NCBI GenBank assembly: GCA_964199315.1
Contig: OZ116711.1
Span: 806,001-870,000 of the forward strand
DNA length: 64,000 nucleotides
Direction of reading: 5' to 3'
DNA from: Orbicella franksi
Taxonomy: Eukaryota
The notes below the pieces were generated by a model. That model did no database searches and was not told the origin of the DNA. It worked only from the letters and a program-made list of their open reading frames with translations. The position numbers were made by a program, and so were the translations under genes. The first letter of the stretch is position 1; the number at the start of each line of letters is the position of its first letter. Below are positions 3,419 through 63,881 of this stretch, piece after piece.

Positions 3419-6400
3419 ATGGAGATGCTTGTATGGAAAGCTGCGAGCCTGTCTATCTTGCTGTATAGTCTGGGATCTTCAGGTAAAACGTTGCTCCGTA
3501 CCGCAGAATGCTTAGCAAATCACTTATTTTAAATAGAATTAATGATTTCTCTTAATCTTCTGAAAACTTATAACTTGAAAAGATTTATCGCAAATTTGAC
3601 TTTTGACTTTAGAGATCCGAAAGAATAACGACGAAAAAATACAGTGCCTTTTCCTAATCAAACAGGAAAAATTTCGAAGATCAAAAATGTGTTACTTGAA
3701 GTGGTTTGAAACTCAGTTCCGCTGTTTTACTTAAAGGCTGTACCCACTCGTGCCTGCAGATTGTTCGTTTTAAGAGGCTCTTCTGTGCCGATCTCAAGCT
3801 AAGATCAAAAGCGTGGCAAAAAGCGTTCTCGAACGCGCACATGGTCCGTGTTCCAATATCAGTGACTCGGCAAAATGTTCGAGACGACGGCATTCAAGGG
3901 GTCATGGAACTGAGAAGAGCAAACTGAAAGGGGGGGCGGGGAGGGGAGTCGAATCGAAAAGCGAAGAGGTGGGAGGAGATTGTTGGGTGTATGATGAAGC
4001 ACACCAGTGTCTTACCGGAAGTGTCGTCAACTCAACATAACCAAGCAAGAATTAAGCTTCTAGCACTTGAACGTATCTAGAAATCAAAAAATCAAAAACA
4101 TGTTAAATAGGATGACTAAAAATTTGGTGGCTAAAAGGAGTTTTCCATTGAAGACGTTGAAGGATGTGACTTGAAAGGCAGATGCTCGGAAGTACCTTTT
4201 TTTTCTGTACCACCAGGAGCCATAATCGGGGACTCCGTCCCCGATTATGGCTCCTGGTACCACATAAAGTGATAATATTTTCCAATGACTTCAGTTTCGA
4301 TTTCTTTCGTTATTATCAGGCGATCCGTTTATATTCTTTTAACCGATGCCAGTAAATTCTTCGCTCCTTTCGGTTCACGTGTCCCGTAGCACGACCTTTT
4401 TACGGGATGGGGGTTGTTAGCCCCAAGCCCAACCCTCCTCCTTTATCCGGGCTTGGGACCGGCAAGATGGGACCAGAGGACCCATCCAGGCGGAGTTACA
4501 AGGTTGTACAGGAACTCGGTCCTACGGTATGCTAAATCTTGCCCGTAATTCGGCGGGTAGGTTTCAGAAGCCATATTAATTTTAGAAACCATTACCAGTG
4601 AAAACGCCCTGCGTGATTGAATTCCTGGGAAACAACTTCCTATTGGAAAATCGATTGAATATTAAGCACTTGACAGTGAGCTTTGTTTCCCCGAGACTTT
4701 CCCTAGGGAGTTAGTTAGCTTTGTTCGCCCTAGGGAGTTAGTGAGTTTTGACCCACGACACTTGACTCGTTCTCCCCAATCAGAAAACGTGTTTGAGCTG
4801 AGAGGTATAACAAATGTGTTTATTTCTTAGTGTGCGATGGATGTAACGAGACGTTTCAAGCAGATAAAGGAGGCTTTCATTCGCCTAACTACCCACAACA
4901 GTACCCGGATGATCAGTACTGCTCCTGGAGGATCACGGTCAGCCTCTCCCATCAAGTGTACTTGATGTTCACAAGCTTTAATTTACAAGCTGAAAACAAC
5001 ACAGATGCTGTTTATATGTACGATGGAGACAGTGAGACAGAGAAGGTGTTGGGAGTGTTTTATGGCAGTGAACGTCCCTCCAAAGGAATATATTCCTCGT
5101 CAAACAGTTTACTTGTAGTATTCAAGTCAGATAATAAGAGTTCTTCCACTGGTTTCCAGGCCGTCTACCATGCTATAAATTGTTCTGGTAAGTTAAGTTA
5201 TGCAGTCTTTTTCGGTTTTACAAGAAGTTTAAATGCTTAGTGTATCTCTGTAATTTTTAGTAACCGTGTCTTAAATTCAATAGGGTTAAATGAGTAAATA
5301 GACACACTCGGAAAATCGAGTACTGATTACTGAAGGAGGTGGAGTGACTTGGAATAAGAAGTACGCAAAGAGAAGCAGACATGGGAGTGATAGAAAATAA
5401 GCTACACAATCCTCCTGGGTTAGGCTCTACTGTGACGACCTTGAGAAATGATTAGCTAGAGATCTTTAGATTGGACGAGTACGAGACTGAATACGAGTAC
5501 GATTTGCGAATTTCAAACGAGTGACGTTTCCAGAGTCCTCGCTCTTCGTGTTGCTTTTAGGTGGAGAGAGTAGTTCATGGGATGCAATGGGTATGTGACG
5601 TTATAACGTGGAGCATGCAAACTAGAATTGAAAAGAGGTACTCGTACTCAAATCCTAAGTCCCCTACTGCTGATAACCCTCCTTCAATATCAAGGCTCGT
5701 CTCTAGGAGGGGTTCTCGGTGCGAGGTACCTAGCTAGAGGAACCAATGAAAATTGCACGATAGACCACAAGCTTAAATTTACTTGTAATTTTTGAGTAAT
5801 TTTAAAAAATTCAGTGAAATAACTGTAGCAGTATATGTAAGTTAGTGATAATTTGATAAAACAGTTATTCCATATGCGCGTGCTGGATATAATGCGATTA
5901 TAATCAATTGATTTCAGCTAAAATTCTGCGCCGTGACCTAGTTAGAAAAGGAATTGAATAGCGGGAACGTTATTTAGTCGATTTTCCAGCAAATTTAATT
6001 CGGGTGCCACTGGAACTTACATGTGGGTTCTTGATAAGAGCTATGAGGTTTGATGTTTTCGTTACAAAGATGAGAGCTACTTTTTAGCGAGGCCGGTTGC
6101 CAAGTTAACAAAGCATTTTCTTGAGTGATATGATTATTAGAAACTCATGACATTTGTAATGTTTTTGTCCCGCTGTAGTTTCCTTTCTGAATATTTACAT
6201 TCGAAGCGAAGGTTGCGACGATCCAGGAAAGACGTTTGGTATATGTGGTCGTGCTTACATCATGGTTAATGGAAAGGATCATTCGGTTCATGGGAGGGGC
6301 CATAATGTCGTCATTGTGGATGCTGCAACAGGTGTAGTAGCGCACACTCAATATGCAGTGTTTAGTACAATCAGTATAGCCAATAGCCAATAGCTAAGCG

Positions 6401-9400
6401 TAAACTCCACGTTAAATAAAGTATCGTATCGTAAATAAAGTATTCTATGTTGCCGTACGCCTAATAAATGACAGATGACGTCAAAATGTGGTAAGAACGG
6501 AAAAGTGGCACATGAGGCGATAGCCGAGTCTGTCACTGATGCTCTTACTATATTTTGACGTCTTGTGATTAATTACTGAGCAGACGCACGGCAATCATGG
6601 AGTCTTTGATTTATGTAATAATGCATTTCAACGACGTCATTTTTGCGCTCGTCCAATCAAACTGCGAGAATAATTTGACTTGTGAAATAAAATGAAATAG
6701 AAAATGCATTCAATTCCTGACCAAATGCACTTATGTCTCCTGTAGTTAGTGGGTTTAAGGACCTTTAAGAACACAAACTTTACTAAACGTATACTACATA
6801 CCAACAGCGAGGTGAAAGCGTTACAAATCATTATGTTGCGTTTTTTTTTTTTTAAATCAGATCCAATTCGACTTTACATGGTCGAATTGATTTTTTTAAC
6901 TACACTCACAAGAAAGCGTATTTATCATATTTCTGATTATGCCAAATTGAAGCTTGGTTTGAATGCATAACTGACACGTGTTCTTTGAATATAGGAGCAG
7001 TGTTGGCGTCAAGAAGTTATGACACTCACGGCAGTAGGGCTCAAGGGATCGGATTAAGCAAATATCTTAACTCCATTACTGAAAAGTAAGTTCAGGACCG
7101 ATGAAGCTATCTTGTTTCTGCTGTTGTTATTTCTAGTTTTTTTTCTTTTTTGGATTTCTTGGCATATGTTTTAAAGAAAAAGAATGTGAACGAAACTTAT
7201 CTTGAGCGACTATTTCAACGTAAATGTTGTATAAATTATGGGTCAGAGGAAGCTACACACTAAAACAAACAATAGATTTGTGATCATTTTTATCGTTTTG
7301 AACCTGAAATGCTATTGGTCAATTAGTACATAATTTACTTCGGCGCCTTCCTTGGAGTATCTTTAACATTCATCTATAACATCCATATATCTAAGGATTG
7401 CAATTTGTCTACTTTTACTTACTTACTTAGTTAGCTAATATATTTTGTGTAGTGTCACCAAATTGGTTCATTTCAACGTCATGAAGATTGAAAATTGAAT
7501 TAAGTTGCTTCAAACGGATTATTGACGAAGTTTGAGGCCAAGAAAGCCGAAATTTGGCCCATTTCCAGCCTTCTTGACCGAATGAGCTTCGGAAAACAAA
7601 CAAACCAGCAAAAACAGCAACAGCAGCAACAAAATATTACATGGCATAAAGAAAATCGGGCACATTGTGTTGTGTTCTTGGGCGGGACACTTTACTCTCA
7701 CAATTTCTCTCTCCGCCCAGGTGTATGAGTGAATGGGTACCAGCGAATTAAATGCTGGAAGGTAACCCTGAGATGGACTAGAAACCCATCCAGGGGGGGG
7801 GGGGGGGTACAAACACTCCTTGTCGCTTCATGCTACTGAAACCGGAATAAACTCCGGCCTGGTGGATCACTCCGCTCGTATGCAAACTTTGCCTTTTAAA
7901 CCTTTACAAAGGTAACTTTACATTTATAAACCATTCCTGTGAGGGAAAGAGCGGGTAATCTCGAGCCGGGAAGACTTGCGTGCTTGTGGAGCTAGCCAGA
8001 TGATGTAATAATGTATTGATGGTTGATTTATTCACGAGAAAAGGCATTTAGCTGGCCATTTACTAATAAATCGAAATACCTGTTCTAAGTCACTGACTTT
8101 CTTTTAACTGCAGTAAAATCGTTCTAATCGCCATTCAAGACGAGGGATCTGAGTTTGTGAGACCAGCTTTAGGTGCTCTCAGGAGACTAGGCGCTAAAGA
8201 TCCCATCCTAGTAAAATTTCGAGGTTCATTTGCTCTAGCTGGTTCCACTCAGAACAACAAGCCACATTGGGTCACACAAGACCAGCATGTTCGGTACAAA
8301 GGACCCAGCGAGATCTCTTTGAGAATTCTTCTCCAAAGCCACCGACCACGTAAGAATGTAGTCACGCATGTTTGACTTAAGAGTAGCGGTAATTGCGGTG
8401 GTAGGGTGCCAATAGCAGTAGCAGTAAAAGTGACAGTAGCAGTCACATAAGCAGCTGCCAGTAGTAGTAAGTAACAGTTCAAGAAGCAGTGTTGGCTGCG
8501 GTAGCGATGGCAGTATCGGTGGAATCAGCAATAAAGGTAGCAGCAGCAGTGGCGGCAGTAACAGTAACAGTATTAGTAGCAGTGGCAGTGGCAGTGGCAG
8601 TATCTGTTGGGGTAGCATGTAACAACAGTGGCAGTAGCAATAACAGTATCATTAGCAGTAATAGCAGGAACGATAGTGTTATCAGTAGACATATCAGTTG
8701 ACATATCAGTTGAGAGCGGGGATACTCAGGAAACTCCTAAAAGAGACAATTCTTACCCCAGTCTAAAACAGACAGAAAAATTGGAGCCATAGCAGAGTAA
8801 AGTGACGATAAAGACCTAAACAATAAAAGATCTCGTGGGCGAAAAAATTTTAATTTTGTCAATATAGGCCTTCAACACAGTATGACGCGTAGTGGCATCG
8901 TTAATTTTGTTGCTTGAAGCCGTAAAAGATATCTTAATACGTAAGAATTTGAACATTTTAAGAGACATAAAACAAGCATCCCCCCCTCCTTTACCTAAGA
9001 TTCCCCCCGCCCCCGCCAGGTAACTATACTGACACTTCATTCCTTTAATTCTAAATTTCTAGCACCTCTTGGAATGGAGAATGGTGAGATCGCTGATGCC
9101 CAAATAAGCGCATCTTCACATTGGAGTTATAATTACGCGGCAACGCAGGGGAGGTTAAGTCCTAAACGACGGAGAATCGACAGTGGGTGGTTTGCTCGTT
9201 CAAATGATCTCAATCAGTGGCTTCAGGTGGATCTCGGCAGTTTTACCACAGTGGTAGGTGTAGCGACTCAAGGAAGGTATTCATACAGGTGGAGGCAGTG
9301 GGTAACCAGTTTCAACGTACAGTACAGCAATGACGGAGTGATCTTCCAATTTTATACGGAAACATGGAACTCCTCCGCGAAGGTATGCACGTGCGGGGCG

Positions 9401-12400
9401 GGGGGGGGGGTTGAGGAGAGAGGGAGATACTCTCCTAAATAGCTTCAAAAAGCATCCAGAAACCCCCCAAGGCATGATGTATACAAATATACACGTATTG
9501 TCTTGTTTTCAGTTCTTACACTTCTTTCAGGTAAATCCTAAGAGTCAGAAGATAGTTTGGGGATATGTGATAAATTTTATTAGAGTTCATCGGTCGACTA
9601 CTTACAATGTCGTGGTCGTTTGGCCACCAAGAAATAGTAGTTATGGCAAGGGGATGTTGTATTGGGATTTTTCCATGGTAAAATTGCTGGTTTAGCCGTT
9701 TTAAAACGATGGTTCTTCTACAACCCTAGAAAGGTATACAGTTACTCGATATTACGACGCGCGCGATCGGACTCGCAGCCAGGCCATCTTTAGCGCTAAT
9801 CTTCGCGGAAAATAATATGGCGTGGGAAGATTGTCGCGTAGATTGCGTTATTCGGAGAAAGTCATCAACTACGAAAACCCAATCTGTTGTAACGTATTTC
9901 AAACTCTCCTTTTTACCTCTAAATAATTCCCGGATTCCATTCATGCTGGTCCCATTCGAGTCAATCAGTTTTGCCCATTAAAAAATGGTTCAACGTAATT
10001 GGTCACTGGTTGGGGGGAAAATGATCTATAAATATCCCGCTCGCTTATCTGATAGGACAAGACCATATACCAGTTATGGACACTAGCATTATGACCTTCT
10101 GATAACGGACTCATGTCATGGAATGAGATGCCAAGGTTTCCTTAAAACATGGGGATTAATACGACAAACGTCGAGATTCTAAAGATATGAAGCTTTTTTA
10201 CGAAATCTTTCTCTTCATTCACGTAGGTGTTTAACGGAAACCAAGATGGTGACACAGTTGTTTATAACGAACTGGATCCACCAATCACAACACAGTATAT
10301 CAGGGTGAGGCCATTGACTTGGTACAAGCACATATCAATGAGAATGGAGCTCTATGGTTGTCAAGGTATTCTATACATGAATGATTTCTCAGTATTGTCA
10401 TGATTATATTTAGCGCCCACTTCATTGTTGTTGGAAGTATCCACAAATTAAAGAAATCACCTTCAAATGGGCTGTTTATTTAACCTAAAATGCATAAGAT
10501 TGTTGATCGGCCCAATTTTGGCCCGTTAGAGACCTAGATAGGTCAATTGGACAGACTTATGAAGAAAAAAGAAAGTTTTAGAAAAAAATGTGCTTTTCCT
10601 TAAGAGACGGATATTCGATTCTTTACGTATGTACTAGCTACGCAACACTTTCGAGTGGTATACCATGGAATATCCCACGAATTACTTATATTTTCTCGGT
10701 ATACACACGAATCCTACCAAGAAAATGCAATTGATAAGGAAATGAAATTAGTAGCCAAGTCAAGCAATGCGGCACGCGCGCGTCGCACGATGGGAAGGCT
10801 GGGTGTCCTACCGTCTAGTGTATAGTATTCTGACTGGATGTATTTTTAAGGCATGGTAGAAATACTTAGACGGCACAATACCGAGATATGACGATTGTAA
10901 TAGTTTAACATTTTACTGTGGCTGAGTCTTGTAAAATTAATCTTCTTAACAGACTAGCCTTTCGCCCGGATAACTAGCGTTTCCAACAGAAAACACAAGA
11001 CTACAGGGTGATTACTTTGCTTCAATAACTTTAGGTTGCATACAACCTCTTGGCATGGAAAGTGGAGTGATACCCGATTCCCAGATAACCGCCTCTTCAG
11101 TCAACAAGAACAATCAATCTCCAGCACGAGCCAGGCTGAATAATTTGGGTTGGACTGCAGCTTTAGATGATCTCAAATCATGGCTTCAAATAGATCTGGG
11201 AAGTTACAAAATAGTGGCACGACTGGCAACCCGAGGTTCTTCACAATCAGTACCTGCGTCCTGGGTAACCAGCTACAGGTTACAATATAGTGATGACGGA
11301 TTCTTGTTCCATTTTTATCAGGAGCCAAGAGACACTTCTGCTAAAGTATACCCAGATTTTATGTGTGATCAAAAATTATTTTGTTTCGCATTCTTATTTC
11401 AAAGTCTAATTATTTAATATTTTTTCTCTCTTTTTTTTTTTAATGTGCAGGTGTTTCGCGGAAATCAAAACGCTGACTCTGTCGTGTATAATAAACTCAG
11501 TCAGCCAATCACAACGCACGTCATCCGGATATTGCCTGTACAGTGGAGCAAATACGTATCAATGAGAGTAGAAATTTACGGCTGTCAAGGTACATACGTA
11601 GATCTGTATAAAAATGTAAACCGGGAGTACACACCAGTACTAACTTCAAATGAGAGCAGTTCGCCGAGTCGATAGCAGTAAAAACACCTTTATAGGGTAA
11701 AAAGTTCGGTGTTTTAAACCCGATAGACAACTCAAGCTCTCTAGTTGTAAAATAACAAGTGATAAGACAACTATTATGTTGAGATTCACGGTGACGATTG
11801 GTCTGCCAATTTCAATTATAGCTTGTATAGCACCTCTTGGCATGGAACGGAAGTCAGTCTCTGATAACCAAATAAGCGCGTCCTCCCAACTGGATGGAAA
11901 CCACTCCGCAATACAGGCCAGGTTGCATTCCAAGGCTGGCGCTTGGTCACCTCTCACTAATGATCTTAATCAGTGGCTTCAGGTGGATCTTGGTAGTGCT
12001 ACCCGTGTGACTCGTGTGGCAACCCAAGGAAGCAATGCATACAACGAGTCGGTGACCAGATACAAGTTGCAGTATAGTGATGACGGAGTGACCTTCCAGT
12101 TTTACAAGGACGTTGGAGACAGTTCCGCAAAGGTATTTGCACGCTGTCAACGAAATATACATTTATTCATTAATTCATGTTTTAGCGTGTATCATCAAGT
12201 TATGATGCGCGTGGGGAGAGCACAAAAAAAAAAGCCAAAGAGAGAGAGTATCTTTAGCTTCTTGTATGCTTTCCAAAGCGCATCATCTTCATCTCTATGT
12301 ACATCTACTAATTTCGGGTTAGGGTTAATTCGTAGCAGTCTTAGGTTGTTTTAAACAAAGAACAAGCTTTCAGTTTCTGAAGAAACTGTTGTGCAGGGTT

Positions 12401-15400
12401 CTTAGGCAATCAAGACACTTATATGACTGTACAAACGAGCATTAAAGTCCTCACGCGTCCCATGCCCAGATCCAGGACTTATGAAGAAGATGGCGATGAG
12501 CCTCACATATTTGAGTCAAAAGGGTGGTTGAAAGGGAGGGGAACAGTTACTCCCCCAGTCCCCTCCGTTAGATGTGCCACACATTGTTTAATGCAAATTT
12601 CGTTGTTTTCAGATGTTTGATGGAAATCAAGAGAGTGGCACCGTTGTTTACAATAAACTGAGACGACCAATCGTAACAAGCTACATCCGATTTATACCAA
12701 CACATTGGAACAATCGCATTTCAATGAGGATTGAGCTCTTTGGTTGTCCAGGTATTTGTATCAGACTGTTCAAATCAGCCTTGTTACCAAGATACCGTAA
12801 AGGTCCGAATTTAAACCATTTCAGAAATGATGATGAAATTTCATGGCTGTTAACAAATTTCGAAAGTGACGTCCATCCAAATGTTCAAACTTGTTATGAC
12901 AAACAAGAGAACCAAGAAATAAACCAAACTGAACCAAACAGAACAAGCTGGCACTTGCTTTCGATGACTTATTATACATTCTTTTTAATGTGACCCTTTC
13001 TTCTCTGAAGGTAATGTGAAAATCTTTGCTTTATGCAGATGGCTTGGGTCCTATGGGGTATACATTTTAGCTACTTAAAAAACGCGATTTTCCACAAGTG
13101 GCGATAAGAAAAGGCTGCTAAACCCGCAAGTAGTAATCATAGATACTGATTGAAATGTCAAAACGATTTCAAGAAGTAGGGCGTACCTCTCGTTCCTGGA
13201 GAGAGTTCGCCTATTCTCGTTGGTTATCTCCTGTCGTTAAAGTTTGCTTGTACTGATCATTTCAGATTGCCTAGCACCTGTTGGTATGGGGAGTGGAGCA
13301 ATCTCTGATAACCAAATAAGTGCGTCTTCACAAAAAGATGACAACTATGCGCCACAGCGAGGCAGGTTGAATATGAAGATAAGCGGAGTCAAGCAAGGAG
13401 GGTGGAGACCTCTCCGAACTGATTTCAATCCATGGCTTCAGGTGAATCTTGGTAGTTACATCCGTGTCACTCGTGTGGCGACTCAGGGAAGAGACGGATC
13501 CGACATGTGGGTTACCAAATATAAACTACTGTACAGTATGGACGAAGCGTCTTTCAACTTTTACAAGGAAGTACATCAAAAGTCCGCCAAGGTAAGACCG
13601 TGTTATCACAATTGCCTCGTGCATTTGACCAGAAAATCAGTGCTGTTCAAATGTTATTTCTTCATTAAAATCTGTTTCACCTCATGAAATAGTAAAAAGA
13701 GATGGCTCTGATTTTATCAGAAAAAATACGATATCTTGCTAATAACACGACGGCGGCAATCTTCGCCATTTTCTAGACGACCTGGGTAATGACTATAAGT
13801 GTGCGATAGCAGTGAATCGATTACAGTGTGTGCATTAGTATACATGCACTATTGTATTGGACGAATTCCAGCAACACTTACAGCTACGTAACGGTGTATG
13901 TTTTGTTTAAGTGTATGCTTTGTTTTTGCGTTTAGGTGTTTGATGGAAATGACGACAGTGCCACTGTTGTTTATAACATTTTGAACCCGCCATTCACAGC
14001 ACGTTACGTCAGGATAGTGCCGGTAGAGTTTCACAAAGTCGTGTCAATAAGATTGGAGATCTACGGTTGTCCAGGTATTTTCCAGTGATTTCTGATGTAA
14101 AATGATAGTGCCTGAAGTTTTAGTTCCTGCTAGCAGTAATACTGCAATAAATAGTCCAAACCATGTCATGGAGAAGTACCAAACTGACATTGTAGACTTC
14201 ATGTTAGTTGCATGAAAGCATCGTATAGCGGGAAATAGCTGCCAATGAAGCTTGAAGGGGCTGGGTCACAAAATTTCAGTACAGACCCACTGGTCATAAA
14301 ATTAACTGAAGTAACACAATAACGGATAAAAAAGAATTCAAGAGAAACACACAAAAAGCAAGGGAAACACACAAATATACAAAAAACAAATTTATATCAA
14401 TATGTATGAAAGTGCCATTTGCAATGCCTGGAAGGTATTCTTGTTTGTTTTGAGGGCGCGATTTCCCCAGTAAATTAATGTTACTCTACCAATTTGAAGT
14501 TTTGAGCCCACACGTGACGAAAATAAGCTGAATTACCTAAAGTACTGTGACCTGGCCCATTCTAACTGTTAGCATCATGATATGGATGACAGAAGTCTGG
14601 GATACATACTAAACAACAAATAGAAATTAAGTATCTAACAGGAATGTATTACAAGTGTAAACCTGGAAACTACCCAACTGCTCTTTACTTGCTACATTAA
14701 TTTGCTAAAATGTATGGTCGAAGGCCAAGTCTCTGGCACTTGTATGAGTTATATTTTAAAGCTCTGTCTTTGTTTAATAAATCCAGGCTGCATTGCATCT
14801 CTTGGCATGGAAGATGGAGCTATATCCGATGCCCAAATAACCGCATCTTCACAATGGGATGACAATCATTCCCCGGCACGGGCCAGGCTGAATACCAAGA
14901 TGGCTGGCCCCAAGAAAGGAGCCTGGTCATCTCGCCCATCTGATCTCAATCAATGGCTTCAGGTGGATCTTGGTACCTATACAATAGTGACGCGTGTAGC
15001 GACTCAGGGTAGGAATGGTCACAATCAGTGGGTGACCAGTTACAGAATAGAGTATGGTAACGATGGAGTGAACTTTCATTTTTATCGAGAACCAGGCGAC
15101 AGTTCACCAAAGGTATTTTTACCGCGTCAGCTTTTCTCCTAGTTAGCGGGGTGTGCGGTAGCGTAATGGTTTTGTATAGAATGAGGTTCATCCACGGTCT
15201 TTTTTCACGAAGGAAAAAGTTGCATACGAGGAAACTTTAAAAGTATAACTACAACCGGGAGGCAATAAACTAGACGACTGTACGAAAAAAGCCTAAAGAA
15301 TTCCCGCAAGTTTTTTTAAAGCTTTTGGAACAGTTGCCTTTAACAAGACTTTGCTAGGGAGGGGGTGGGGAGAAGGGGAGGAATTTTGGGGTAGCTAAGC

Positions 15401-33083: not shown

Positions 33084-33366
33084 TTTGCTAGGAATCATGT
33101 GAATTTGGCGTGATATTCTCGGAAACGTGACCTGAAGTATCCAATCGGGATCACTAGTGCTCGGGTATCGAACATTTGTTTACTCAAGTTCAGTGGACCA
33201 CAATCGAACTCAGTCGCTCGAAACGTATTTAGACCTATTTACGCTTTTGTGTCAATACAAGACTCTGAGAGTAATAATGCAGGGTTAAACGTGTAAAAAA
33301 AAACTAACTATATTATCTTTAAATCGAGACAGAAGACACTTAATAAAGCCCTTTCCCTTTAACTTG

Positions 33367-42791: not shown

Positions 42792-42882
42792 GAATCCTTC
42801 ATATTGATTGGTTGATTGTTTTAAATAATTAATGCAAAATTTGGCCAAATAAAGATAATTTATGCATTATGCCGAAATAAAA

Positions 42883-45800: not shown

Positions 45801-46533
45801 AAACAAGAAGAAATACTTTGATGATGCTTTTGGCAAGTTCATTGACAAGTTCCTTTTACAGAAAGTAGATGTCAATGACTGCTGCAATGATGATGACTAT
45901 GTCAAGAATTATGCCCTTTGTTTTATTTTCTTGGCTATTCTTGTCATGCAAATGAAGGACACTGCAGCAGAGGGAGATGGCAGCAGAAATCTCATCAACC
46001 AAAAACTCTTGCTGTCAGTTTTCAAGTCAGTGGGGGCTTACAGCAAATATGCCATTGAAATGTTTGTGAGTATAGCCCAAATTGAGTGCCTATTAACTCC
46101 ACGCCTGGCTGAACAGTTCAAATGGGGATTTTTTGTAAATTGGAGGGGTGGTGCTGGAAGGAATATTGAAGACGACCTGGCCCAAGAAATTTCCAACCGT
46201 TGCAGTAAAAGCATTGTCCAGAGGCAGGGACCAAACAAAACCCTGAACTCTATAAGCAAGGTCTGCAAAGCAACCACTGGCATCCATCAGATTGTAGAAG
46301 AATTTGACTCTTCTGTAGGGATCCACAAGACATCTGTGCAACATACAACACGTGACTCACTTAAAGATGAGAAAGAAATGGTGTCTGACCTATTGCGATT
46401 GAATCCTTTCAATCATATGCCAGCAAGATTTCATGACAGCTTCCCTGACATTAAAAGGTCTCCTCTAAGGTATTTAAACATTGTGGACTATCATCAGTGG
46501 CTAGCCAAACACTTGGAAGAGTTATCAACTTAG
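42883..46533 (+). CDS. Academ-type DDE transposase (DUF6589-like) with an N-terminal C4 zinc finger (zf-AD-like); 2 exons, ~1008 aa
   Basis: Join 42883-44085 and 44710-46533 (AAG|GTCAGT, TAATAG|CTT; phase 0) reads ...GGCTKK-LQERLNKLGVCLS.... Motifs GDNWD, AGDQLT, PVMWH, DDLAQEISN; CRLC...CRGC at the N-terminus. An alternative ATG is at 42862. Confidence 0.85.
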
Positions 46534-50350: not shown

Positions 50351-53300
50351 ATGCTGTGGCAAACTTATGCGATAACTGTCCTGTTCAGCCTGCAATCATC
50401 AGGTAGGTTTAAAGAGCATGTTCTCGAGATCCCATTGACATTGCAAGCTGGGAAATGTAAACAATCGTGACTCGAAACTAAAAATACATTCCTGTCTTTG
50501 ACGACATTATTTGACACAGTTTCTGATAACAGGTTAAAATAATGACTGTAAGGGCAATAACTGAGCAAAAGACAGAGTGATCCTGGCCGTACTAGTGGTC
50601 GCATTTAACTGGAAAAAGACAATAGATACATCGTATAGTTTTAAAAGCAACGACCTTCCGAAAGTAGCGACCATTCGAAAAGACGCGCAAAAGTCTTAAG
50701 GTTTTTAGAAAATCTTGTAGGCGGATGTATCGACCCTCGTAAGTAATTTCTTCAAACGTGACTTCTTGTCAGAGAAAGAGGGACAACAGACAGAAGAAGC
50801 AGTTCAAAACTGATGTGACGTAAGTACAATTACGATGGGAATATATAATTTTTTAAAACTAGGTTCGATCTTTTCATCTCTCTACATAAAACAACCGAAG
50901 GAATGTTTCCTTTCACGAAGTATGGTATACGTTTTATAGCTAACCATTGTTGATTAAATGGCACCCTTACAGAAGCTTTTGGAAAAGGCTGGCAAATTAG
51001 AATTCTAACAAGGGTCGTGTTGTTTTGAAACTCTACGTTAAGATATGCGTACAGCATTCCGCATATCAATTTCGAAAGTATTCAAAGTTTATTACAGGAC
51101 TTCCTGAGCAGTTACTGAGCTTTGTTTTGCGAGGATCTTTTTGAGCCGGGCGGCCAAAATCAGCTAAGTTTTGAAGGAATAGCTCGAAAAGATGAATTTA
51201 AGCAGCCGAAGGAGAATTGAGAATGCAAAGGGCTTAATTTGTAGAAAGTTTACCCCAATAGAATCGAATCGAAGAATCCAATCGAATTAAAGTCAGCAAA
51301 GTAGAATGAAATGGAGTTTCTTCTCGACAATTTATGTCGACAAGACTGAGTTCTTCTGATAACTGATCTTGCTATACGGTAGGAATCATGCAAATTTGGC
51401 GGGATATTCTCGGAAAGTTATTTGACCTGGAGTAGTCAACCGGTGATCATTAGTACGACGGGTATGGAACATTTGTTTAGTCAAATTCAGTCAATCGAAC
51501 TCAGTCGCCCGAATCATCTTACATCGAACGGCTATCCACGTTTTTTGTGTATAATACAGGAATACGCAACGCAAGCGAGGAAAGGATTGTACTCTGTTAC
51601 CATATCTTTATCTGCTGATTACTGCACGCTCGCTGCATTCCCATACAAACTCTTATTATTCTTTCAATACAGGGGACATCACCAAAACAACTAGAAAGTC
51701 ATGATCATCATCTTTTAAAATGTCTTATGATAAAACATTCTACATAATTAAATGAAGTCTTAGCTAAGAATACATATAAATGATTGTTACACTTAAAAAG
51801 CTGTATTCTCAGACCATACTTATGGAACCATGTTAAGCTTCAGACAGTGAATTGATATCAATCACTATATTTTAATTTAATCCATAGAAAAGCTCGACAG
51901 AGATCTCCCGCCATTATATATGACCAACTGAAGCAGATATGTAAATGTATAAAATAGAAAGCTACAATAGCATTCTTCAAAATTCGATCTTCTTGAAACT
52001 TTTATCATTGAAAGTGGTTTTTTTTTCCTTAGCCTAACTATTTAGTCTTGATATAATGATAAAGATGTTTTAAACTTTTGTCGACTGTCCCTTGACCGTA
52101 CCATTACTTTACAGGGTCTGTTCAATGGCCAGCTGGAACATACGGAATACCCAAACCTAGAGCCGGGTGTCCTCAGGCTGATGGCTTTCGTTGGCAGACG
52201 GGATGGAGACTACAGGACACAAATTATTTTGACGATCGTAACAAATCAAACAACTCAAGGTCTCCGCAATTCCACATCGACGGAAAAGTAAAGAAAATTA
52301 CAGTTAATCGATCGTTTTGCATGAAAGAAAATACAACTGATGACAAGGATAGACCCGAGTGGCCACAAGGTTCGTCAAGTACTTTCTCCATTCCCGATTA
52401 TGCCTCCTGGCGTAGTTTATTAATTTAATGTTCAGCACGAAACCTTAATTTTACTCGGTGACTTCTAACGTGTCTAAAAGACACGTGTTGCATGCAGCTC
52501 GTGTCTTTTTAGACTCGCGGTATTCTTAGAGAATCTGACGTGTATACTCTCTTGAGTAGATGATTGAACTGTGCCATCATTGACCATCCACTGATACAGT
52601 GCCACACTAATGCAAAACGTTGTAAAACGTCAAGTTCCAAGAAGTTGAGAAATGACTCCAGCCTATTGGACATGAAAATTTTCCAATTTCAATTCCAACT
52701 CCAATTCAATTCTATATTTACACAATCATATCAGGGTGGAAAATTACCGAACAGCTCTCAAAACTCTCAACTTGATGGCCTTAACTCATATTTCTTTTGC
52801 CTTTAGTGTTGTGAATGTGTGGGTCACGATCACATCAAGTGATCAATTTCAAGGTAGCACATGAAGAATATCAGATACAGTGTTTCTGTGGTCATATGCA
52901 TATCTCTTACATGAATTTACCTGGAGCTAGTAGCCTCGTTTGTGAATTGAGTATATTGCCTGAGTAAAGGGGTTTTGTAGTACAAAATAAAAAAAGGGTT
53001 GCTACATTTTTTTCAACATCTCCTAAACAAAGTAGAAATCTATTCCATTCCCAGCAGGAGTAGTCATGTGGTAAGAAAGATTATGATTTGATTTTAATAA
53101 CCTTAACGGATTCAACCATTCCTTTTGCTAAAGCAACGTTGCTTTCAAAGAAAGTTTCTTATACTTTGCCGTGGGTCTTACCATAACATGGGCCAAACAC
53201 GTGTTAGAGTCAACCTCGCTCTACGAGATGCTGAACAGTCAAAGGAGTCTATATTTCGTAGACTTTAAGGCATGTTTGCTAATTGGAAAGATCAAACTAA

Positions 53301-56300
53301 AGAAGTGTTTACAAAATCGTCTATACATTTGCATTTTGCTGAACTTATTATTGCATGATAGCATGAAACACGACAAGACCTGGTCGTTCATTAAATCTAA
53401 CGCTCATTTCAGGGAAATACTGTATTTATAAAAAAGGCCCCTGTCCTGAAGGTTTGACATCAGGATGGGTCTTCTGGAATGACGACCAAGAACTCGATTC
53501 AAATAAAAAGGATGGTCTTCTTCCTGATGGCGATTACGGGGAATCTACGGAGATTGCGTTTTGTTGTAGAACAGACGGAGACAAAGACGATCCTGTCCTC
53601 CTTCCTTCTAAATCTCCATTTTTTCTGCTGGCTTACGAGTCCATGAAATGCCAGAAGGTGAAGGGGGCAGAAGCTAGTTTGGAGTGGATATATTATTCTA
53701 CAAGTGACCGGAACAACGACGACCAACGAAATGGCTCGTATCCTTACAACGCTGGCAAAATGCACCCCACCATTTATTACTGTTACTATCAGGGTGAGAA
53801 AACATGCAATGTAAATTAGAGCGAACATTTCGCCCAGCAGCTGAACTCTGAAATGCAAACTCGGACTGCGTGAAATTTCTCACCAACCCCAACACATACA
53901 TGACAATCATTTGACGAATTCAATTTTTGCTGGCAATGTAATTTTTACAGCTTATCAAGCCCAAGACCTCTCACTCCTTGTACCAATTACAGTAAGGACA
54001 CTTGAACTGTGAACACTTAACAGTTTTTTTGTACATTTTTTTGATGACCATGGAATAAAGCCTCTTCATATAATGTATAATGTTTGTATTTTTTTTAAAA
54101 GTGTAAAAACGCTAAATACTCTTGTTAGAAGGGAAGGCCCGCATTCTATGGTCACTAAAAATATGTTAAAAAAGTCGTAAGTGTTCACGGTTCGAGTGTC
54201 GTCACTGTAAAATTCCCAAATATGTAGGGGACGGCAATTTTCAAGGACAATCTCAAAGCAATTTGTTTTTATTTTCTAGGGCGTTAAAAAACCTGACAGA
54301 CGTCAGTGGCACTCTCAAGTCACTAAACTATACAAAACATTATCCGAATGGACAGTACTGCGAATTTTTCACCTTTTGTTACATAAAGAGTACTCACTAC
54401 ACATAAGTGTAAATTGTAGTAGTTATTGGAACCAAAAGGTAATTTAGTAGTAGGTTGAGACTCAGGGTGACATCTGCCGATGCTCATTGCAGAGGTAAAT
54501 ATTCGATCTGCCAGACATTGACAAATGAAGAATTTTCTATAGAGATTTCAATAATTGTCGAACAGCTGTGAGCATGTGTAACTTAGCTGTTGATTTCTTA
54601 GTAGTTGTTGTCGTTTTTCAGTGGGAACCGCGCAAAAGGAGTGCTTGGTGTGCCACTTTCTTTTGACTGCGCACATGGTACATAATAATGTCCATGGTGT
54701 TTATAGTGGTTCAATGTTTGATTATATGTAGTGTTTCAGTTCTACTGGAACTCAAACTCTCAAAATTTGTGCACAATTTCCTTGTTAAATTAACTTACTT
54801 TTCCGTTATATATAGCGGTTCCTACAAAAGCACAAACCTCGGAAGTGACTTCACCAGAAGACACATCATTACATGTCCTTACTTCCAAGACCTTTACGGC
54901 ACCAAAGGTGACATTATCGTCCACCGCAACATCGATAACAGAAACTTCGAAAGTGACTTTCTCGCTGGTTACTCCTGCCACGACTGCAAAAACCTTAATG
55001 GTGACGTCATCGTCCTCCACACGATCTTCGGAAATGGCGTCGTCCTCTTATGTTATTTCTATGACCCTGCAGTCTCCGGAAGTAACGCATTTATCTCCGA
55101 TTACTCCTGCAGCACATACGCTGATAAAAACGACACCCAGAGTTAAACCGTGGACATCAACAACTAAATTACCACCAAAGATAGGTAGAAAAAGCATGAT
55201 AAAACAGTTTTAGTACCCGACTTTTCGAACGTCTACTTTTTACAAGTACTGTACTAAAGGTTATGGTAGCGAGCCTCTTCTACTTTTTTTCTTGTTTGTA
55301 TAACATTAGACTTCGAGCTGTAGCTTGCTATAGATCAACAGATGGCGACGATGAGGCCCCGAGTCAACCAGGGAAGTGGAACAAAACAGAGAGCGAACAA
55401 CCTCATTATTTTAGCATAACTGGCCAGTGCCTCCGCCATTCTTTATCAGTCATAGGCCAAAGATAAAAATGATTTGTTTTTGCCGTTTAATTTTCTACCT
55501 TGAACAAATAGCTCATTAACAACTGCCCTCGAGCTTCTAGGGCCTTCTCCCAGTTGAACAGAGTAACTGCCTCCTTAGATTCTTAAAAAGGTACGTGACA
55601 TCAGACACGGTGTGTTCCATAGACTCGGTAAGCAGAGTCTACAGGACGCACCAGCTAGTTTACAGGTGCGCCAAGAAAAAAGAATAACAAACTAAAAGTG
55701 TATGTAAAATTTGGTTTGCTGCTTAGTGCAGTTGCCTGAAAGTCAAATTGGTACTGAGAAAGCAACTGAAACTGACAGGGGAAACATGATATACAGCAAC
55801 ATATTAAGGAAAATCAAAACGATAGATAACCCAAAACAATTCTTTTATTCCAGGATGCAACGAAACCCTAACTGCAGTCAATGGCACTTTCCAGTCATCA
55901 AACTATCCAAGAAATTATCCGGATGGACAGTACTGCTTCTGGAGAATCACGGTTATCACAGTACAACAAATCTACTTAATATTCTCAAGCTTTAGTTTGC
56001 AAAATGAAAATAACACAGACGTGCTGTTTGTGTATGATGGAGATAATGCGACGGGGAAGGCATGGAAAATGTTTTACGGAGGTCACCCTCCCCCAAAGGA
56101 AGGAATCTGCATCTCGTCAAATCAGATATTCGTGGTATTCAAATCAGACAAGGAGGGATCTTTCCACGGCTTCAGCGTTTCATATTATGGTGTTAATAAT
56201 TCGGGTAGGTGTTTTTGGGTCCTTTTAAGGCCCCTTCAAGGCCCTTTTAAAACTGGCATAAAATATGCGATTATCTATTAACTCTGATTGCTTTTGCGTA

Positions 56301-58579
56301 TATACAAAACATAAGAAGGCATGGCAATCGAAAAATCAATAGTCAAACACTACACTCTCTTATTATAGCTAAGTAGTTGGCATGCAAGTGATAACCTTTC
56401 ATATAAGTTAACACAATGAAAGTGACACCATCTTCCATGAAATTTAGAGTCCTGTGCCATTGCGGCCTCGCAGCCGTCAAAGGAAAGTGGAAAGAGGAAT
56501 GAAACAAAACAAACACAGAGGAAAGGTAAAACACTCAATTTTCCTCCGCTAAGATAATCATCTTCACTTCTCATGGCGATGATTCGATGGTAACTAGTGC
56601 ACCTGAAAGTCCAGGGGCACCCAACGACCGTTTTCTCTCTAATGCTGTTAGATGCTGTTTTAGGCTATCTGGAGTACTTTTAAAGCTCTGTAGGTTAATT
56701 TTAGGTTGCACTAAAAAAATTTTATCTGTTCGGATATTCTAGGGGAACTTGAGTATTCTCGAATTTATTAATGCTTTTTTGTCCATTTCCCGAAAACCTT
56801 AGGTCTTATCGCCTTTCCGAAAATGATAGCTGACCTTTTTTCGGTACTCAAAACGCCATTTTCAACAGTCCGAAAACAACAGACATTAAATTTCTTATAT
56901 CACGAAAGTCCGAGGTGCCAATTCTCTCAAGAAAATCAGAGGGGATTAAAGGCCTTCCGAACAGATAATTTACCGAAACGATCCGTTGGGTGCCCCTGAA
57001 AGTCTAAATCGAATCAAGACAGTCTCTATAACAGCGAGGAAAAGTTCACTGAGGCCATGAGTATAGATTAAGATTTCAGAAGTAACCCGAGGAAAATCAT
57101 AACGCTATGGGCAGCATAGTACATAATTGACACTTCCGGTCTGCTTTAAATGTCGATTCCATATTTATCGTACTCTCATTAACGTTATTATCCTTCTACA
57201 ATAGGAGACAAAAGTGTTGAGACACTGTAAAGTTCTGTTTTCGGCAGTCCTGGAAACAGTTTTTACCCTCGCCCCCCCTGAAGGATAAACTGCTACGCAG
57301 TCCCCATCACCTACATAACATTGAATTTGGGGGGAGGGGAGGAGGAGGGGGAGGGAGGGAGGAGGCGGAGGTGTCAAAGAATTATCGCTAGATGCCTTTA
57401 AGGGGATAAATACCGTAGAGTATCATTTCTTTAGTGTCCCAACCAGTTTTGTCGCTTATTGTAGTTATTCGGTCTGCTCTAAGTACCTTTAGTTTATAGT
57501 ATTTTCCTGTTTGCAGGTTTAAATGTGGTAGCTGTTATTGTTCCAGTGGTGTTAGCAATTCTTCTAGCTGCCCTGGTGGTAGCTGGAATCTGTTATATAA
57601 GGTAGGAGCATACAATGTATGAAATCAAAAACAGATCAAACAGTTTTAAAATTGGGATTCTCTTTTTATTTAAGGTTGTATAAATTGCAAGAAAAATCAG
57701 TATAAATCATAGTTTGCCATTTGTTTCCTAAAAAGATTACTGCATTTGTGAATTTGGTTGTTTCAGGAAAAGGAGAAAAAGAGTTGAAGGACCAGAAGAT
57801 GACATTTTACTTAGGTGATTTTACTACTTTTTAACAAAAAATAAAATAGTCATTTAAAATTCAGTTTTAATGTTTTTATATCTGTTTTAAACTCCTTTTT
57901 TAAATTTTAATCACGGGCACAGATCGCTCCAAAAGTTTTATCCTTTAAAGTAATTTACAGATCATTTTATTATTTAAGATTGTATAAAATGCAAGAAGAT
58001 CAAAAGCGAATCAGTGTCAATCGTAGTCCGCCATTTGTTTCCTAAAAATAAATACTGCATTTGTGAATTTGGTTGTTTCACGGAAATGAGAAAAAGAGTT
58101 CAAGGACCAGACGATGAAATTTTAAGGTGTTTTTATTACTTTTTTACCGAAGAAATAAAATAGTCCTTTAAAATAATTCACAGATTTGATATGATATTAT
58201 TTAAGATTGTATAAATTGCAAGAAGATCAAAAGCGAATCAGTGTCAATCATAGTTTGCCATTTGTTTCCTAAAACAATTACTGCATTTGTGAATTTGGTT
58301 GTTTCAGGAAAAGGAGAAAAAGAGTTGAAGGACAAGACGATGAAGTTTTAAGGTGTTTTTATTACTTTTTATTACAAAAAGTAAGAAAGTCCTTTTAAAG
58401 TAATTCACAGATTTGATATGATAGAGTAACAAAGTACGTTCTTTGAGCTCGTTCAGTCGCGTCACTGTCTTAATTCAAACAAACAACACCACCACTGTTG
58501 TTATTAAAACGTTTGCATCTTACTGCTTTTTAGGTTAATCTGCGAACCAACTGCGTCAGTTGGAGATACAGAATTATGA
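50351..58579 (+). CDS. Gene B: signal-ApeC-mucin-CUB-TM-tail receptor (528 aa; 543 aa if the third tail-exon copy is also used)
   Basis: Exons 50351-50402 (MLWQTYAITVLFSLQSS), 52115-52369, 53413-53793, 54816-55184, 55854-56204, 57517-57601 (TM GLNVVAVIVPVVLAILLAALVVAGICYIR), 57767-57814 and/or 58308-58352, 58534-58579. Open if the broken CUB exon near 54280 is skipped. Confidence 0.8.
54280..54361 (+). pseudogene. Remnant of the first CUB exon in gene B
   Basis: Aligns to A 35935-36015 with a 1-nt deletion and TAA. After ...GGACAGTACTGC it jumps to sequence matching the A intron near 36450, so most of the exon and its donor are deleted. Confidence 0.85.
56612..56998. mobile_element. MITE with CAGGGGCACCCAACG TIRs
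   Basis: Perfect 15-bp TIR; aaagtc duplicated at 56606-56611 and 56999-57004; empty site cctgaaagtctaa in unit A at ~38480. Confidence 0.85.
57690..58420 (+). repeat. Triplication of the first cytoplasmic exon and flanking intron in gene B
   Basis: Copies at 57767-57814, ~58083-58126 (acceptor broken, tttcacg) and 58308-58352. Confidence 0.9.
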
Positions 58580-61676: not shown

Positions 61677-63881
61677 ATGGTCTTGTGGCGGGTTCTAGTC
61701 ATTATAACATTAAGATCCAGCCCCTTATTATCAGGTAGGCATGTGAGGGAAGTAATTAAAAAGAATTTTTACATCAACTTTGAAAAATAGGTGGAGATAA
61801 ATCGTTGAGTATTTCAGACCCGGAGGGTACTCCCTGAATTTTTAGGCGCAGTTAGGTACGTGTTGCTGGGCAGGGTATGACTTTATTTTAGACATCTTTG
61901 AGTCGTTTTGAACTGGGCACACATTATCATTAGTAGTAACCTAATCAGGACAATGCAACTGTCTGGTGTTTAACTGTGGAGGGATTTGAACGGGGCGTGA
62001 TTGCATAGACGTGTTGAAGTAAACTGAACCTTCTGTTATGTACAATATTGGTTGTATTTATGTTGCTTTAGAGTGATTCTAGCTCGTTAGGTTACCCATT
62101 TACATTGTGAATAAACGAAACGATTTATTTTTTAATACGTTGAACTGTCACTGTAAACATACTCTAGACCAAGGCTAAAATGCAGACTGCAGACTACAGA
62201 CTTTTTAAGTACTATATATCGTGTTATTTCCATTATCGAGTACTAACCGGACACAGGGTTATTCAGGCTAATCGCGGTGAAAGTTTGAACTCCGATTATC
62301 CTAATCACTCCGGTTGGACTTAATATCACTCCGGTTAGCCTAAATAACGCTCCGGTTAGCCAGGTTACGGTCAACGTTCAACGATGGAATTCTGATAAAA
62401 TGTCTTTAATCTGTATTCTGCGGTCTGCATTTTACCCCTGGTCCGCGGCAGTCTGCATTTTACCCTTCAGTCTGCATTTTACCGCGGTCGACAGTCTGCG
62501 TTTTACACTGACCGATACGTTGAAACCTTTTTTACCACAACCAAATGTTTACTTAGCTGTTTGTAAAAATGTTCGTGATAAATTCCTAGGTAGTTGCGTG
62601 CTTAGGGACAGACCTGAGCGCTGGAAGTGCTGAATCCACCTTACTCTAGGAACACTTGACAGAACTAATCGCAATCACTTTGATTTTTGAAATCTGAAGG
62701 GTAACAAAATTTACAGTTCTAGCCTAACCGGTACGTTTAACACCTGAATAACCCATCACCCATTTAGCAGCTTTCCTAGAAAAAGCGCATCCTTTTCTCC
62801 GATTCTTCTAGGAAAGATCAAAGTGTCTCCGCTCGCAAACTAGCTGACGGCACAGTGTTATGATTGCCTCGGAATTGTATGCTTGACAAAACTAATGTCT
62901 CCTATTTTTTGCGTGAGTGTCAGTTTACGTTTTGTAGTTTAAGGCTTCAAAATTGTGAGCAGTGTATTTTTTACAATCAGCTAGGGAAAGTTTTCGAGGT
63001 GTTTCTTGTCAAATTTAGAAAAGGTGAAAGCGGAAAGCTTCTAAAACACTCCTGCCACTTTGCAAATGTTAATTGTTTTTCTACTGCAATCTTCTTTGTT
63101 TGTGGGATTGCTTTACAGAGTCTGTTCGTTGGCCAGCTGGATTATACGGGATACCTAAACCTGCATCTGGGTGTCCCCGGTCAGATGGCTTTGTATGGAA
63201 AGAAGGGTGGAGATCGCAGTCCACTCATGGTAGACCATCAAATAGCACTAAATCAACGGAATTTCACCTTGATGGGATAGTAGATGACACGAAAGTCAAA
63301 AGATCGTTTTGTATTAAAGAAAATATAGCCGACGACGGAAGCAGACCTGCGTGGCCACAAGGTTAGTCTTGTAAAATATTTCGTTCATTTAATTTCCAGG
63401 TTCAATTTGTTGTTTCCGATCTTATTCACTTTTCTCCACCAAGATAGTCATAACTCGCATTACCTTTGATCGTCACTATTATCTATACTCTTTGCAGGAA
63501 AATATTGTATTTATAGGAAAAGGTACCAGTGCCCTGCAGGTTTCACATCAGGTGATGTCTTCTGGGATGATGAAGACACTTGGAACTCGAATAGACTCGG
63601 CGGAACACTTCCAGATGGCACCTATAACACGAACACATGGATCTATTTTTGCTGTAAAACAGATGGAGATAAAGATAATCCTATCCTTCTCCCTTCTAAA
63701 TCTCCATTTTTTCTGTTGGCTTACAAGTCAGCGAAATGCCAGATGGTCAAGTGGGCAGTAGCTACTTTGGAGTGGATATATTTTGACACTGAAGACTGGA
63801 ACAACCAAGACCAAGCCGATGGGGCATACCCTCATGATGCTGGGAAATCACCACCTACTGTGTATTACTGTTATTACCGCG
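61677..63881 (+). CDS. Gene C (5' part): signal-ApeC, probably continues past the window
   Basis: Exons 61677-61734 (MVLWRVLVIITLRSSPLLS), 63119-63361 and 63498-63881, all phase 1 and open; 8 ApeC cysteines; donor G|GTGAG at 63882. Confidence 0.82.

Follow-up and report, generated by a model that had tools for sequence, protein, structure and literature searches.

A discoidin-array gene at the head of a coral ApeC-CUB gene cluster is very probably a product of exon shuffling

How did a gene encoding thirteen discoidin domains come to stand at the head of a tandem row of ApeC genes? The question is raised by a 64-kb stretch of the genome of the coral Orbicella franksi (contig C14, positions 806001–870000; host genome of 497 Mb), referred to below as the window, in which such a gene (gene 1) is followed by genes A and B and the 5' part of gene C, all on the + strand. 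The window forms the upstream end of a tandem cluster spanning approximately 110 kb, which extends past what an earlier note on this DNA had seen, since genes D, E and F lie downstream and a further gene or gene pair (ApeC-CUB-ApeC-CUB-transmembrane) was found at 2.04 Mb of C14. The earlier note had interpreted the locus as a tandem family built on a common scaffold. All of its literal statements were recovered at their places, peptide coordinates included, and its core stands: a CUB tree together with the signal exon, the transmembrane (TM) exon and one tail cassette support a tandem family on a shared exon scaffold, of which gene 1 is a shuffled member. We consider it highly probable that gene 1 is a paralogue, of chimeric make-up, within a family of membrane ApeC proteins, assembled on this scaffold by exon shuffling.

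Gene 1 (3419–30207, + strand) was modelled from splice contexts and reading phase, and domain tests here and below were run exon by exon rather than on whole spliced proteins. As shown in Table 1, the model comprises an exon for the signal peptide, a CUB domain, an ILEI module, 13 F5/8C (discoidin) domains, a stalk, a TM exon and three short tail exons, in this order; its 36 exons form an intact open reading frame (ORF) of 2402 amino acids (aa), all introns are of the GT-AG type, and no ApeC exon is part of it. Every ectodomain module in the cluster (ApeC, CUB, ILEI, each discoidin domain, mucin and stalk) is in phase 1 at both ends.

Reads and contigs of four RNA runs were placed on positions 26001–32000, i.e. 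the 3' end of gene 1. This revealed the last six junctions of the gene (26385/26733, 26871/27705, 27815/28523, 28610/28960, 29004/29689 and 29736/30180), each crossed by 157–292 raw poly(A) reads in run X23; the two stalk joints (26871/27705 and 27815/28523) were supported by approximately 200–260 X23 reads and by contigs of both X27 and X1. The 3' joints were also present in the X27 and X1 contigs, except for 29004/29689, which was found in X27 alone. Read depth reached tens to hundreds over the 3' exons and was near zero in most introns, and the 3' untranslated region extended to approximately 30600 as judged by read depth. Gene 1 is well expressed in adult colonies. The earlier note had made its reading depend on the use of the predicted tail exons in cDNA; at the 3' end of gene 1 the TM and tail exons are spliced as predicted, since the six RNA joints use them. 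One further joint (26058–26866, approximately 220 reads), which goes back 809 positions, is most simply explained by reads of the 12b–13a junction placed on the similar exon 13b, rather than by a circular RNA.

The relationship of gene 1 to its neighbours was most apparent in the CUB domain. Each CUB domain of genes 1, A and B occupies a single phase 1-1 exon that matches Pfam CUB (PF00431) with E values of 3e-20 to 3e-28, that of gene 1 over profile positions 1–110 of 110. A six-frame search of the whole 497-Mb genome with the gene 1 CUB yielded more than 300 CUB candidates, among which the best non-self matches were the CUBs of D, C, B, A (A1 and A2) and E (103–149 bits, 50–59% identity), the next locus outside the cluster scoring 74 bits (40% identity); the split CUB of gene F gave partial matches (approximately 47% identity). 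At the nucleotide level, the gene 1 CUB exon is 68–74% identical to those of A, B, D and E. In a maximum-likelihood tree of 39 rows from the 30 best loci (some of them multi-CUB), including eight cluster CUBs and two from a neighbouring multi-CUB gene, the gene 1 CUB and those of genes A (A1 and A2) to E formed one clade (97 by ultrafast bootstrap, 92 by SH-aLRT), to which the CUBs of gene F and the 2.04-Mb gene were sister (95/98). Such a tree against the other CUBs of the species had been proposed by the earlier note, and among these 30 best loci gene 1 falls inside the cluster clade.

The seven CUBs aligned from genes 1 and A–E have all kept the first cysteine pair alone, the positions of the second pair being occupied by N/T and Y/F. 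Judging from this alignment, loss of the second CUB disulfide is a shared derived trait of the clade, and the word "atypical", which the earlier note had applied to the CUBs of genes 1, A and B, is justified because these domains lack it. Glu54, Asp58 and a Tyr-Asp-Gly motif are invariant in the seven CUBs, and an Asp following Lys-Ser is found in six of them; going by general knowledge of CUB structures, the conserved Glu and Asp residues may belong to a calcium site.

Outside the CUB, the signal, TM and tail exons were compared using shuffle tests that keep residue composition (200,000 shuffles in the case of the TM exon). The signal exon of gene 1 reads MLVWKAASLSILLYSLGSS and that of gene E MLWLQAISLITIFYSLKSS, and the likeness of the former to those of E and D is unlikely to be due to chance (p approximately 2.5e-5). 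The signal peptides were found where they had been reported (3419–3481, 50351–50401 and 61677–61733, + strand), with one extra base before the GT in each exon, i.e. in phase 1. The TM exon is 88 nucleotides (nt) long in genes 1, D and E and 85 nt in A and B, in all cases running from phase 1 to phase 2 with a split Arg codon (A-G|GT), and the motif G.N....VVPVV is present in genes 1, A and B; the lengths, phases and motif of the TM exon attributed to these three genes were thus all found. Nucleotide identity of the TM exons amounts to 57% between gene 1 and E and 59% between D and E. None of the 200,000 shuffles reached the score of the gene 1 TM against A, B, D and E (z approximately 6.7), and the TM segments of two unrelated neighbouring genes gave near-zero scores in the same comparison.

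The convincing homology of the tails, on the evidence of the aligned exons, is that of the 48-nt cassette 2, which was missing from the list of shared parts in the earlier note. Its peptides are ATDDLPTAAENLSND in gene 1, SKDESPISAENLYYD in D and SSDQRPISVENPYYG in E; gene 1 and D are identical at 33 of the 48 nt, D and E at 34 of 48 (shuffle p approximately 1e-5), and the length, phase (2-2) and split Arg codon are the same in genes 1 and D. Both tyrosines of D and E are absent from the gene 1 cassette (ENLSND versus ENLYYD and ENPYYG). The last coding exons of A (LTSEPAGSVENTDL) and B (LICEPTASVGDTEL), which were deduced from A-B conservation only, occupy the same place in the same phase and probably derive from cassette 2. 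The last exon of gene 1 (DVLLFQDS) resembles the start of the next cassette in D and E (DLVIAN, DVIIAN).

The ectodomains differ as the earlier note had claimed, with ILEI and 13 F5/8C domains, all of which were counted, in gene 1 and ApeC in A and B. The ApeC (PF16977) exon pairs of A, B and C match profile positions 1–77 and 79–208 with E values of 1e-18 to 1e-47, above the cut-off. Exon 3 of the ILEI module, scored alone, matched Pfam ILEI (PF15711) with an E value of 9e-5 and 23.3 bits, below the family cut-off of 27; however, ILEI was matched by all nine aligned copies of this exon (gene 1, seven paralogues and one orthologue; best E 3e-7), and the protein-atlas neighbours of the module were ILEI clusters. 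A search of the PDB with the single gene 1 exon 3 sequence returned nothing relevant, and a profile of the paralogous copies was needed; its top structures were FAM3B and the POMGNT1 stem, both weak matches (E 0.013 and 0.18, respectively). Each of the 13 F5/8C domains is split over two exons, an a-exon (305–326 nt) that runs from phase 1 to phase 0 and a b-exon (139 nt) that leads from phase 0 back to phase 1, and the PLGM...YGC pattern and exon structure are common to all 13 copies; for domain 7, the two exons matched Pfam F5_F8_type_C (PF00754) with E values of 3e-21 (a-exon) and 3e-8 (b-exon). Two copies deviate in detail: domain 1 (a-exon 9063–9382) has no N-terminal Cys, the residue that in the twelve others is the partner of the C-terminal Cys, and the a-exon of domain 6 (16247–16551) is 21 nt shorter than its siblings, with the donor after FQFYKQ.

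We propose the following course of events. The scaffold would be composed, in order, of a phase-1 signal exon, phase-1-bounded modules, a CUB lacking the second disulfide, a stalk rich in Ser, Thr and Pro, a TM exon of 85–88 nt and phase 2-2 tail cassettes. The ancestor would have been an ApeC-CUB-stalk-TM gene, because the outgroups (gene F, the 2.04-Mb gene and the Acropora protein P0054) all carry ApeC beside CUB. Gene 1 would then have lost the two phase 1-1 ApeC exons while keeping the signal exon, CUB, TM and tail cassettes, and would have gained a phase 1-1 block of ILEI and discoidin exons between the CUB and the stalk. Since the modules are phase-1 symmetric, the reading frame would be preserved through insertion, loss and tandem duplication. 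The direction of change, from an ApeC ancestor to gene 1, is one that we infer from the tree.

The ILEI-discoidin block would most likely have come from the separately expanded ILEI and F5/8C-array genes of the same genome. A candidate donor family exists, because the three-exon ILEI structure was detected at 18 other places (one of which, on C1, is followed by an F5/8C exon approximately 1 kb on) and F5/8C arrays are massively expanded, with at least 719 F5/8C candidates in the genome. Candidate donor loci lie on C7, C1 and C10. Recently amplified arrays, in which near-identical exons with identical scores lie approximately 1.1–1.2 kb apart, were observed at C5:33964748–33978824 and C5:30474816–30500332. 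In an orthologous contig of another coral assembly (L050), signal, CUB, three ILEI and F5/8C exons follow each other in the same order with 71–87% aa identity, and by this comparison the shuffling event would predate the split from that coral. The L050 orthologue keeps the second ATG only, and the second Met may be the true start of gene 1.

Several observations weigh against this reading. A genome-wide TM-exon profile built without gene 1 scored gene 1 at only 16.6 bits (E 5.8), and because of this value and the shortness of the exon the TM cannot alone carry the claim of homology. The stalk exon of gene 1 has no significant similarity to the other stalk exons. As regards tail cassette 1, the earlier note had described a 45–48-nt tail exon common to genes 1, A and B. 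Its phase (2-2) and length class hold (45 nt in gene 1 versus 48 nt in A, 40930–40977, and B, 57767–57814) and are shared by the D and E cassettes, whereas the sequence likeness is at chance level (shuffle p 0.24). Likewise, the tyrosines of VVYKR in gene 1 and EIYLR in A do lie two codons before the split Arg, as had been pointed out, but since the cassette is without significant similarity their position is unsupported as evidence of homology; a conserved motif of the ITAM/ITIM (immunoreceptor tyrosine-based activation or inhibition motif) type was not found in the tails, the tyrosine of EIYL being replaced in all three B copies, and any hint of signalling through this tyrosine is weak. The joins of signal to CUB and of CUB to ILEI follow from phase and conservation, the RNA junctions covering the 3' end. 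No ApeC relic was detected in gene 1 introns, tblastn of six ApeC exons against positions 2500–9000 of the window giving only noise (E of at least 0.37), and no intron in the 5' part of gene 1 aligns with the 5' regions of genes A, B, D or E; that ApeC was lost is thus read from the tree only.

Moreover, gene 1 is the single non-ApeC member found, so that module exchange rests on one event. The description of the locus as one chassis with exchangeable modules was overstated, given this lone case and the differing placement of the modules around the CUB: the insert follows the CUB in gene 1, while ApeC precedes it elsewhere. Searches for other inserts on the scaffold did not extend the set. A search for such inserts in other corals with the TM and tail of P0054 gave Acropora orthologues only; when 1.84 billion representatives were searched for the CUB, proteins with many CUBs (cubilin, tolloid) crowded the list, the useful matches being P0054 and P0123, a fragment of the gene 1 orthologue; and a word-based search with the P0054 CUBs, crowded in the same way, added only ApeC-CUB proteins of Acropora and Montipora, and no gene-1-like architecture.

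Two other explanations of the structure of gene 1 have to be set against exon shuffling. Gene 1 might not be one gene, its signal and CUB exons being the decayed remnant of an ApeC gene upstream of a separate ILEI-discoidin gene. The RNA junction evidence does lie outside exons 1–5, and decayed pieces occur in the cluster (the stop codon in the gene A signal exon and the CUB1 remnant of gene B, both described below). We nevertheless consider this unlikely, given that the phases of gene 1 all fit and its ORF is open, that signal, CUB and ILEI exons keep their order and frame in L050 at the identity given above, that the sequence ahead of the ILEI exon showed no other signal exon, and that RNA ties TM and tail cassettes of the ApeC-family type to the discoidin array. 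Because of this last connection, the chimera would stand even without its 5' end. It is less credible still, to the point of being highly improbable, that there is no common scaffold and that gene 1 and the ApeC genes, merely adjacent, gained similar domains independently. The clear gap in score between cluster CUBs and all others, the supported clade, the loss of the second disulfide common to the cluster CUBs and a collinear likeness over four exons, with matching phases and lengths and each beyond shuffles, argue against such independent gains, although CUBs and single-pass TM segments are very common, CUB candidates are as numerous in this genome as stated above, and the TM profile score is not significant genome-wide.

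Table 1. Positions in the window of the predicted features of gene 1, genes A–C and a neighbouring insert
Feature	Position	Strand	Remarks
Gene 1, signal exon	3419..3482	+	64 nt, ends in phase 1; ORF and GT donor; kept in orthologous contig L050
Gene 1, CUB exon	4831..5187	+	357 nt, phase 1-1; Pfam CUB E 2.8e-28; lacks second disulfide
Gene 1, ILEI/FAM3-like module	6179–6331, 6995–7085, 8114–8349	+	3 exons, phase 1 in and out; splices chosen by phase
Gene 1, 13 F5/8C domains	9063..26871	+	26 exons; motif scan, splice contexts, uninterrupted ORF
Gene 1, Pro/Thr/Ser-rich stalk exon	27705..27815	+	111 nt, phase 1-1; RNA joints on both sides
Gene 1, TM exon	28523..28610	+	88 nt, phase 1 to 2; RNA joints
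Gene 1, tail cassette 1	28960..29004	+	45 nt, phase 2-2; peptide RYGKDLNIKPVVYK; RNA joints
Gene 1, tail cassette 2	29689..29736	+	48 nt, phase 2-2; peptide ATDDLPTAAENLSND; ends CG|GT; RNA joints
Gene 1, last coding exon	30180..30207	+	28 nt coding, DVLLFQDS and stop; RNA joint 29736/30180
Gene A	31753..41193	+	signal 31753–31810; ApeC 34126–34392, 34798–35172; CUB1 35935–36285; mucin 36629–37162
Gene A, continued		+	CUB2 37752–38102; TM 40677–40761; cassette 40930–40977; last coding exon 41148–41193 (...TDL, stop)
Gene B	50351..58579	+	signal 50351–50402; ApeC 52115–52369, 53413–53793; CUB1 remnant 54270–54361; mucin 54816–55184
Gene B, continued		+	CUB 55854–56204; TM 57517–57601; cassettes 57767–57814, 58308–58352; last coding exon 58534–58579 (...TEL, stop)
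Gene C, 5' part	61677..63881	+	signal 61677–61734; ApeC 63119–63361 (E 1e-22), 63498–63881 (E 9e-46)
Transposon-like insert between genes A and B	42859..46530	+	outside the family; two long ORFs: zf-AD E 1e-9, DUF6589 E 3e-37

The predicted gene B is a tandem duplicate of gene A, with 75–84% nucleotide identity, introns included. Both copies show signs of decay. The signal exon of gene A contains a 3-nt insertion and, at codon 4 (ATG ATG CTG TAG), the stop TAG in place of the TGG of gene B; RNA depth at this exon is approximately 0.1–0.25 (run X23), the remaining ORF of the gene being intact. Because of the stop codon and the near-zero depth, gene A could be a pseudogene, or else a null confined to one allele. 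In gene B, a deletion relative to gene A (approximately 36017 to 36448) has removed most of CUB1. What is left (54270–54361) corresponds to roughly the initial 90 nt of the exon, is not in frame, meets a stop codon directly behind the acceptor and is presumably a skipped pseudo-exon. The tail cassette of gene B is triplicated, with two intact copies (57767–57814 and 58308–58352) and one near 58080 that has the acceptor CG instead of AG. The intron preceding the TM exon of gene A carries a 1.7-kb insertion (38946–40636) relative to B, the flanks of which align to B at 57478/57476.

The CUB of gene C begins just past the window end, at C14:870291. The adjoining segment (C14:870001–877000) contains this CUB and a Ser/Thr-rich exon, as well as a 332-aa Myb/SANT-like ORF. 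The TM-exon profile found no TM exon of gene C before the signal exon of gene D, and from the sequence its product may be secreted or truncated. In the 50 kb downstream of the window, the CUB of gene C is followed by the ApeC-CUB-stalk-TM genes D and E with multi-cassette tails. These genes (C14:881–895 kb) have long tails of repeated phase 2-2 cassettes, some of which are NPxY-like (ENLYYD, ENPYYG, NPLYEA, NPIYDRF). Gene F, also downstream, is a sixth ApeC-CUB-mucin-TM gene. The same 50 kb contain two unrelated genes, one SRCR/FN3-like and the other multi-CUB. Introns of gene 1 (28000–28400) and gene B (58673–59168) carry an abundant repeat with a conserved ORF-like stretch (...MKRLGVF...DGILVH...), over which RNA contig depth amounts to approximately 25,000–55,000 with many loose ends; it is probably a highly transcribed element, SINE-like (short interspersed element) or otherwise dispersed.

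As to function, the genes encode, by sequence prediction, type-I membrane glycoproteins, which would serve as binding receptors at the cell surface. Known ligands of discoidin domains are galactose-type glycans, phospholipid or collagen, and calcium-binding CUBs mediate protein contacts. The distal module would set the class of ligand, ApeC being directed at bacterial wall glycans and discoidin at galactose-type glycans, lipids or matrix; the CUB could offer a calcium-dependent protein-contact site through its conserved Glu and two Asp, and the tail cassettes would set trafficking or adaptor coupling. The tails contain NPxY-like motifs in D and E, a T-x-L C-terminus in A and B (predicted ...TDL and ...TEL, fitting the class I PDZ-ligand pattern S/T-x-hydrophobic) and an acidic dileucine-like DRDVLL across the last junction of gene 1; all of these are pattern matches only. 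An immune or symbiont-recognition role for the cluster is a plausible hypothesis. A more specific proposal, which we regard as rather doubtful, is that of a modular receptor system specific to corals, in which one membrane scaffold (signal, CUB, stalk, TM) is combined with alternative lectin-like heads (ApeC for glycans of bacterial walls, ILEI-discoidin for other glycans or the surfaces of symbionts) and alternative tails (NPxY-, PDZ- and dileucine-type) for the recognition of microbes or Symbiodiniaceae and for phagocytosis. If this were true, exon shuffling would re-pair a class of ligand with a cell response (uptake, anchoring or sorting).

Compared with recognition, a structural function, be it adhesive or mucin-like, explains the data about equally well. 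The family would then be real, and its members would be mucin-like adhesion proteins of the glycocalyx, of tissue-skeleton attachment or of mucus, with no part in immunity or symbiosis, a possibility that we take seriously while placing it somewhat short of an even chance. Genes A, B and F have long Ser/Thr-rich mucin exons, as does the Acropora homologue (NCBI "serine-rich adhesin for platelets-like"), gene 1 is strongly and constitutively expressed in adult colony RNA without challenge, and matrix and adhesion proteins commonly contain discoidin and CUB domains. The skeletal matrix of corals also includes ectodomains of transmembrane proteins (PMC3748352). However, peptidoglycan binding and bacterial agglutination have been shown for the ApeC domains assayed so far, which come from other genes, those of amphioxus and molluscs (PMC8361754, PMC9585378), and ApeC proteins, again of other genes, are markers of an immune cell type in Stylophora (PMC8162421). 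In addition, the endocytosis-type tail motifs of D and E would suit uptake receptors better than static adhesion.

On present evidence, the finding is evolutionary and structural, and falls short of a demonstrated immune system. To our knowledge, corals lack adaptive immunity, and the surface receptors by which they sort pathogens, commensals and algal symbionts are poorly known. The locus offers a concrete set of candidates, i.e. membrane-anchored ApeC proteins and an expressed sister gene with a 13-discoidin head, and this natural head swap on one anchor and tail allows the contributions of head and tail to be tested separately.

The earlier note had called the system possibly undescribed, which applies in part. 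The ApeC-containing proteins (ACPs) are a described, domain-promiscuous and lineage-expanded family that includes membrane-bound forms in cnidarians (PMC8361754, PMC9585378), and Acropora homologues of the same ApeC-CUB-mucin-TM layout are listed in NCBI as uncharacterized proteins; in the limited literature search performed, neither this cluster nor a CUB-ILEI-13-discoidin membrane protein was found to have been described. Genes A, B and C encode the ApeC domain (PF16977) that defines ACPs; gene 1 is not an ACP but a scaffold paralogue, because it lacks this domain. Like amphioxus ACP5 (signal, CUB, spacer, ApeC) and the mollusc short form, A–F have full ApeC and CUB domains behind a signal peptide; unlike the characterised ACPs, which are secreted, they are predicted type-I membrane proteins with the order ApeC-CUB-mucin-TM and cassette-built tails. 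Homologues are found in Acropora palmata (LOC141866665) and Acropora muricata ("serine-rich adhesin for platelets-like"; P0054, P0152), in which ApeC is followed by CUBs of the same type (49% identity to the gene 1 CUB). They share mucin regions, the TM start GLN...IVVPVV and a short basic tail with the cluster genes, and differ in having three CUBs and a much longer mucin; they are known from annotation only (NCBI "uncharacterized"), and no ILEI or discoidin version turned up among them in this homologue search. For an uncharacterized protein of Montipora foliosa (P0194), CUB and ApeC domains are recorded and nothing more.

In overall architecture, gene 1 resembles neuropilin-1 and -2 and DCBLD1 and DCBLD2, which have an N-terminal CUB, discoidin domains, a single TM and a short non-catalytic tail, and a comparison with solved structures places neuropilin CUBs among the best matches to that of gene 1 (E 2.6e-20). 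Gene 1 differs from these receptors by its single CUB, its ILEI module, its 13 discoidin domains in place of two, and the absence of MAM and LCCL domains; this is a resemblance without orthology, the architecture having arisen independently in a coral ApeC-gene cluster. The ILEI module weakly matches the ILEI/FAM3 fold of FAM3B/PANDER and the POMGNT1 stem, but whereas the former is a secreted cytokine-like protein and the latter the stem of an enzyme, in gene 1 the module is an internal part of a giant membrane protein. The shuffling of phase 1-1 modules in metazoan extracellular proteins is known as Patthy's rule. Gene 1 fits it in principle and would provide a clean textbook case of phase-1 exon shuffling, in which the recipient family and a candidate donor family are both present in one genome.

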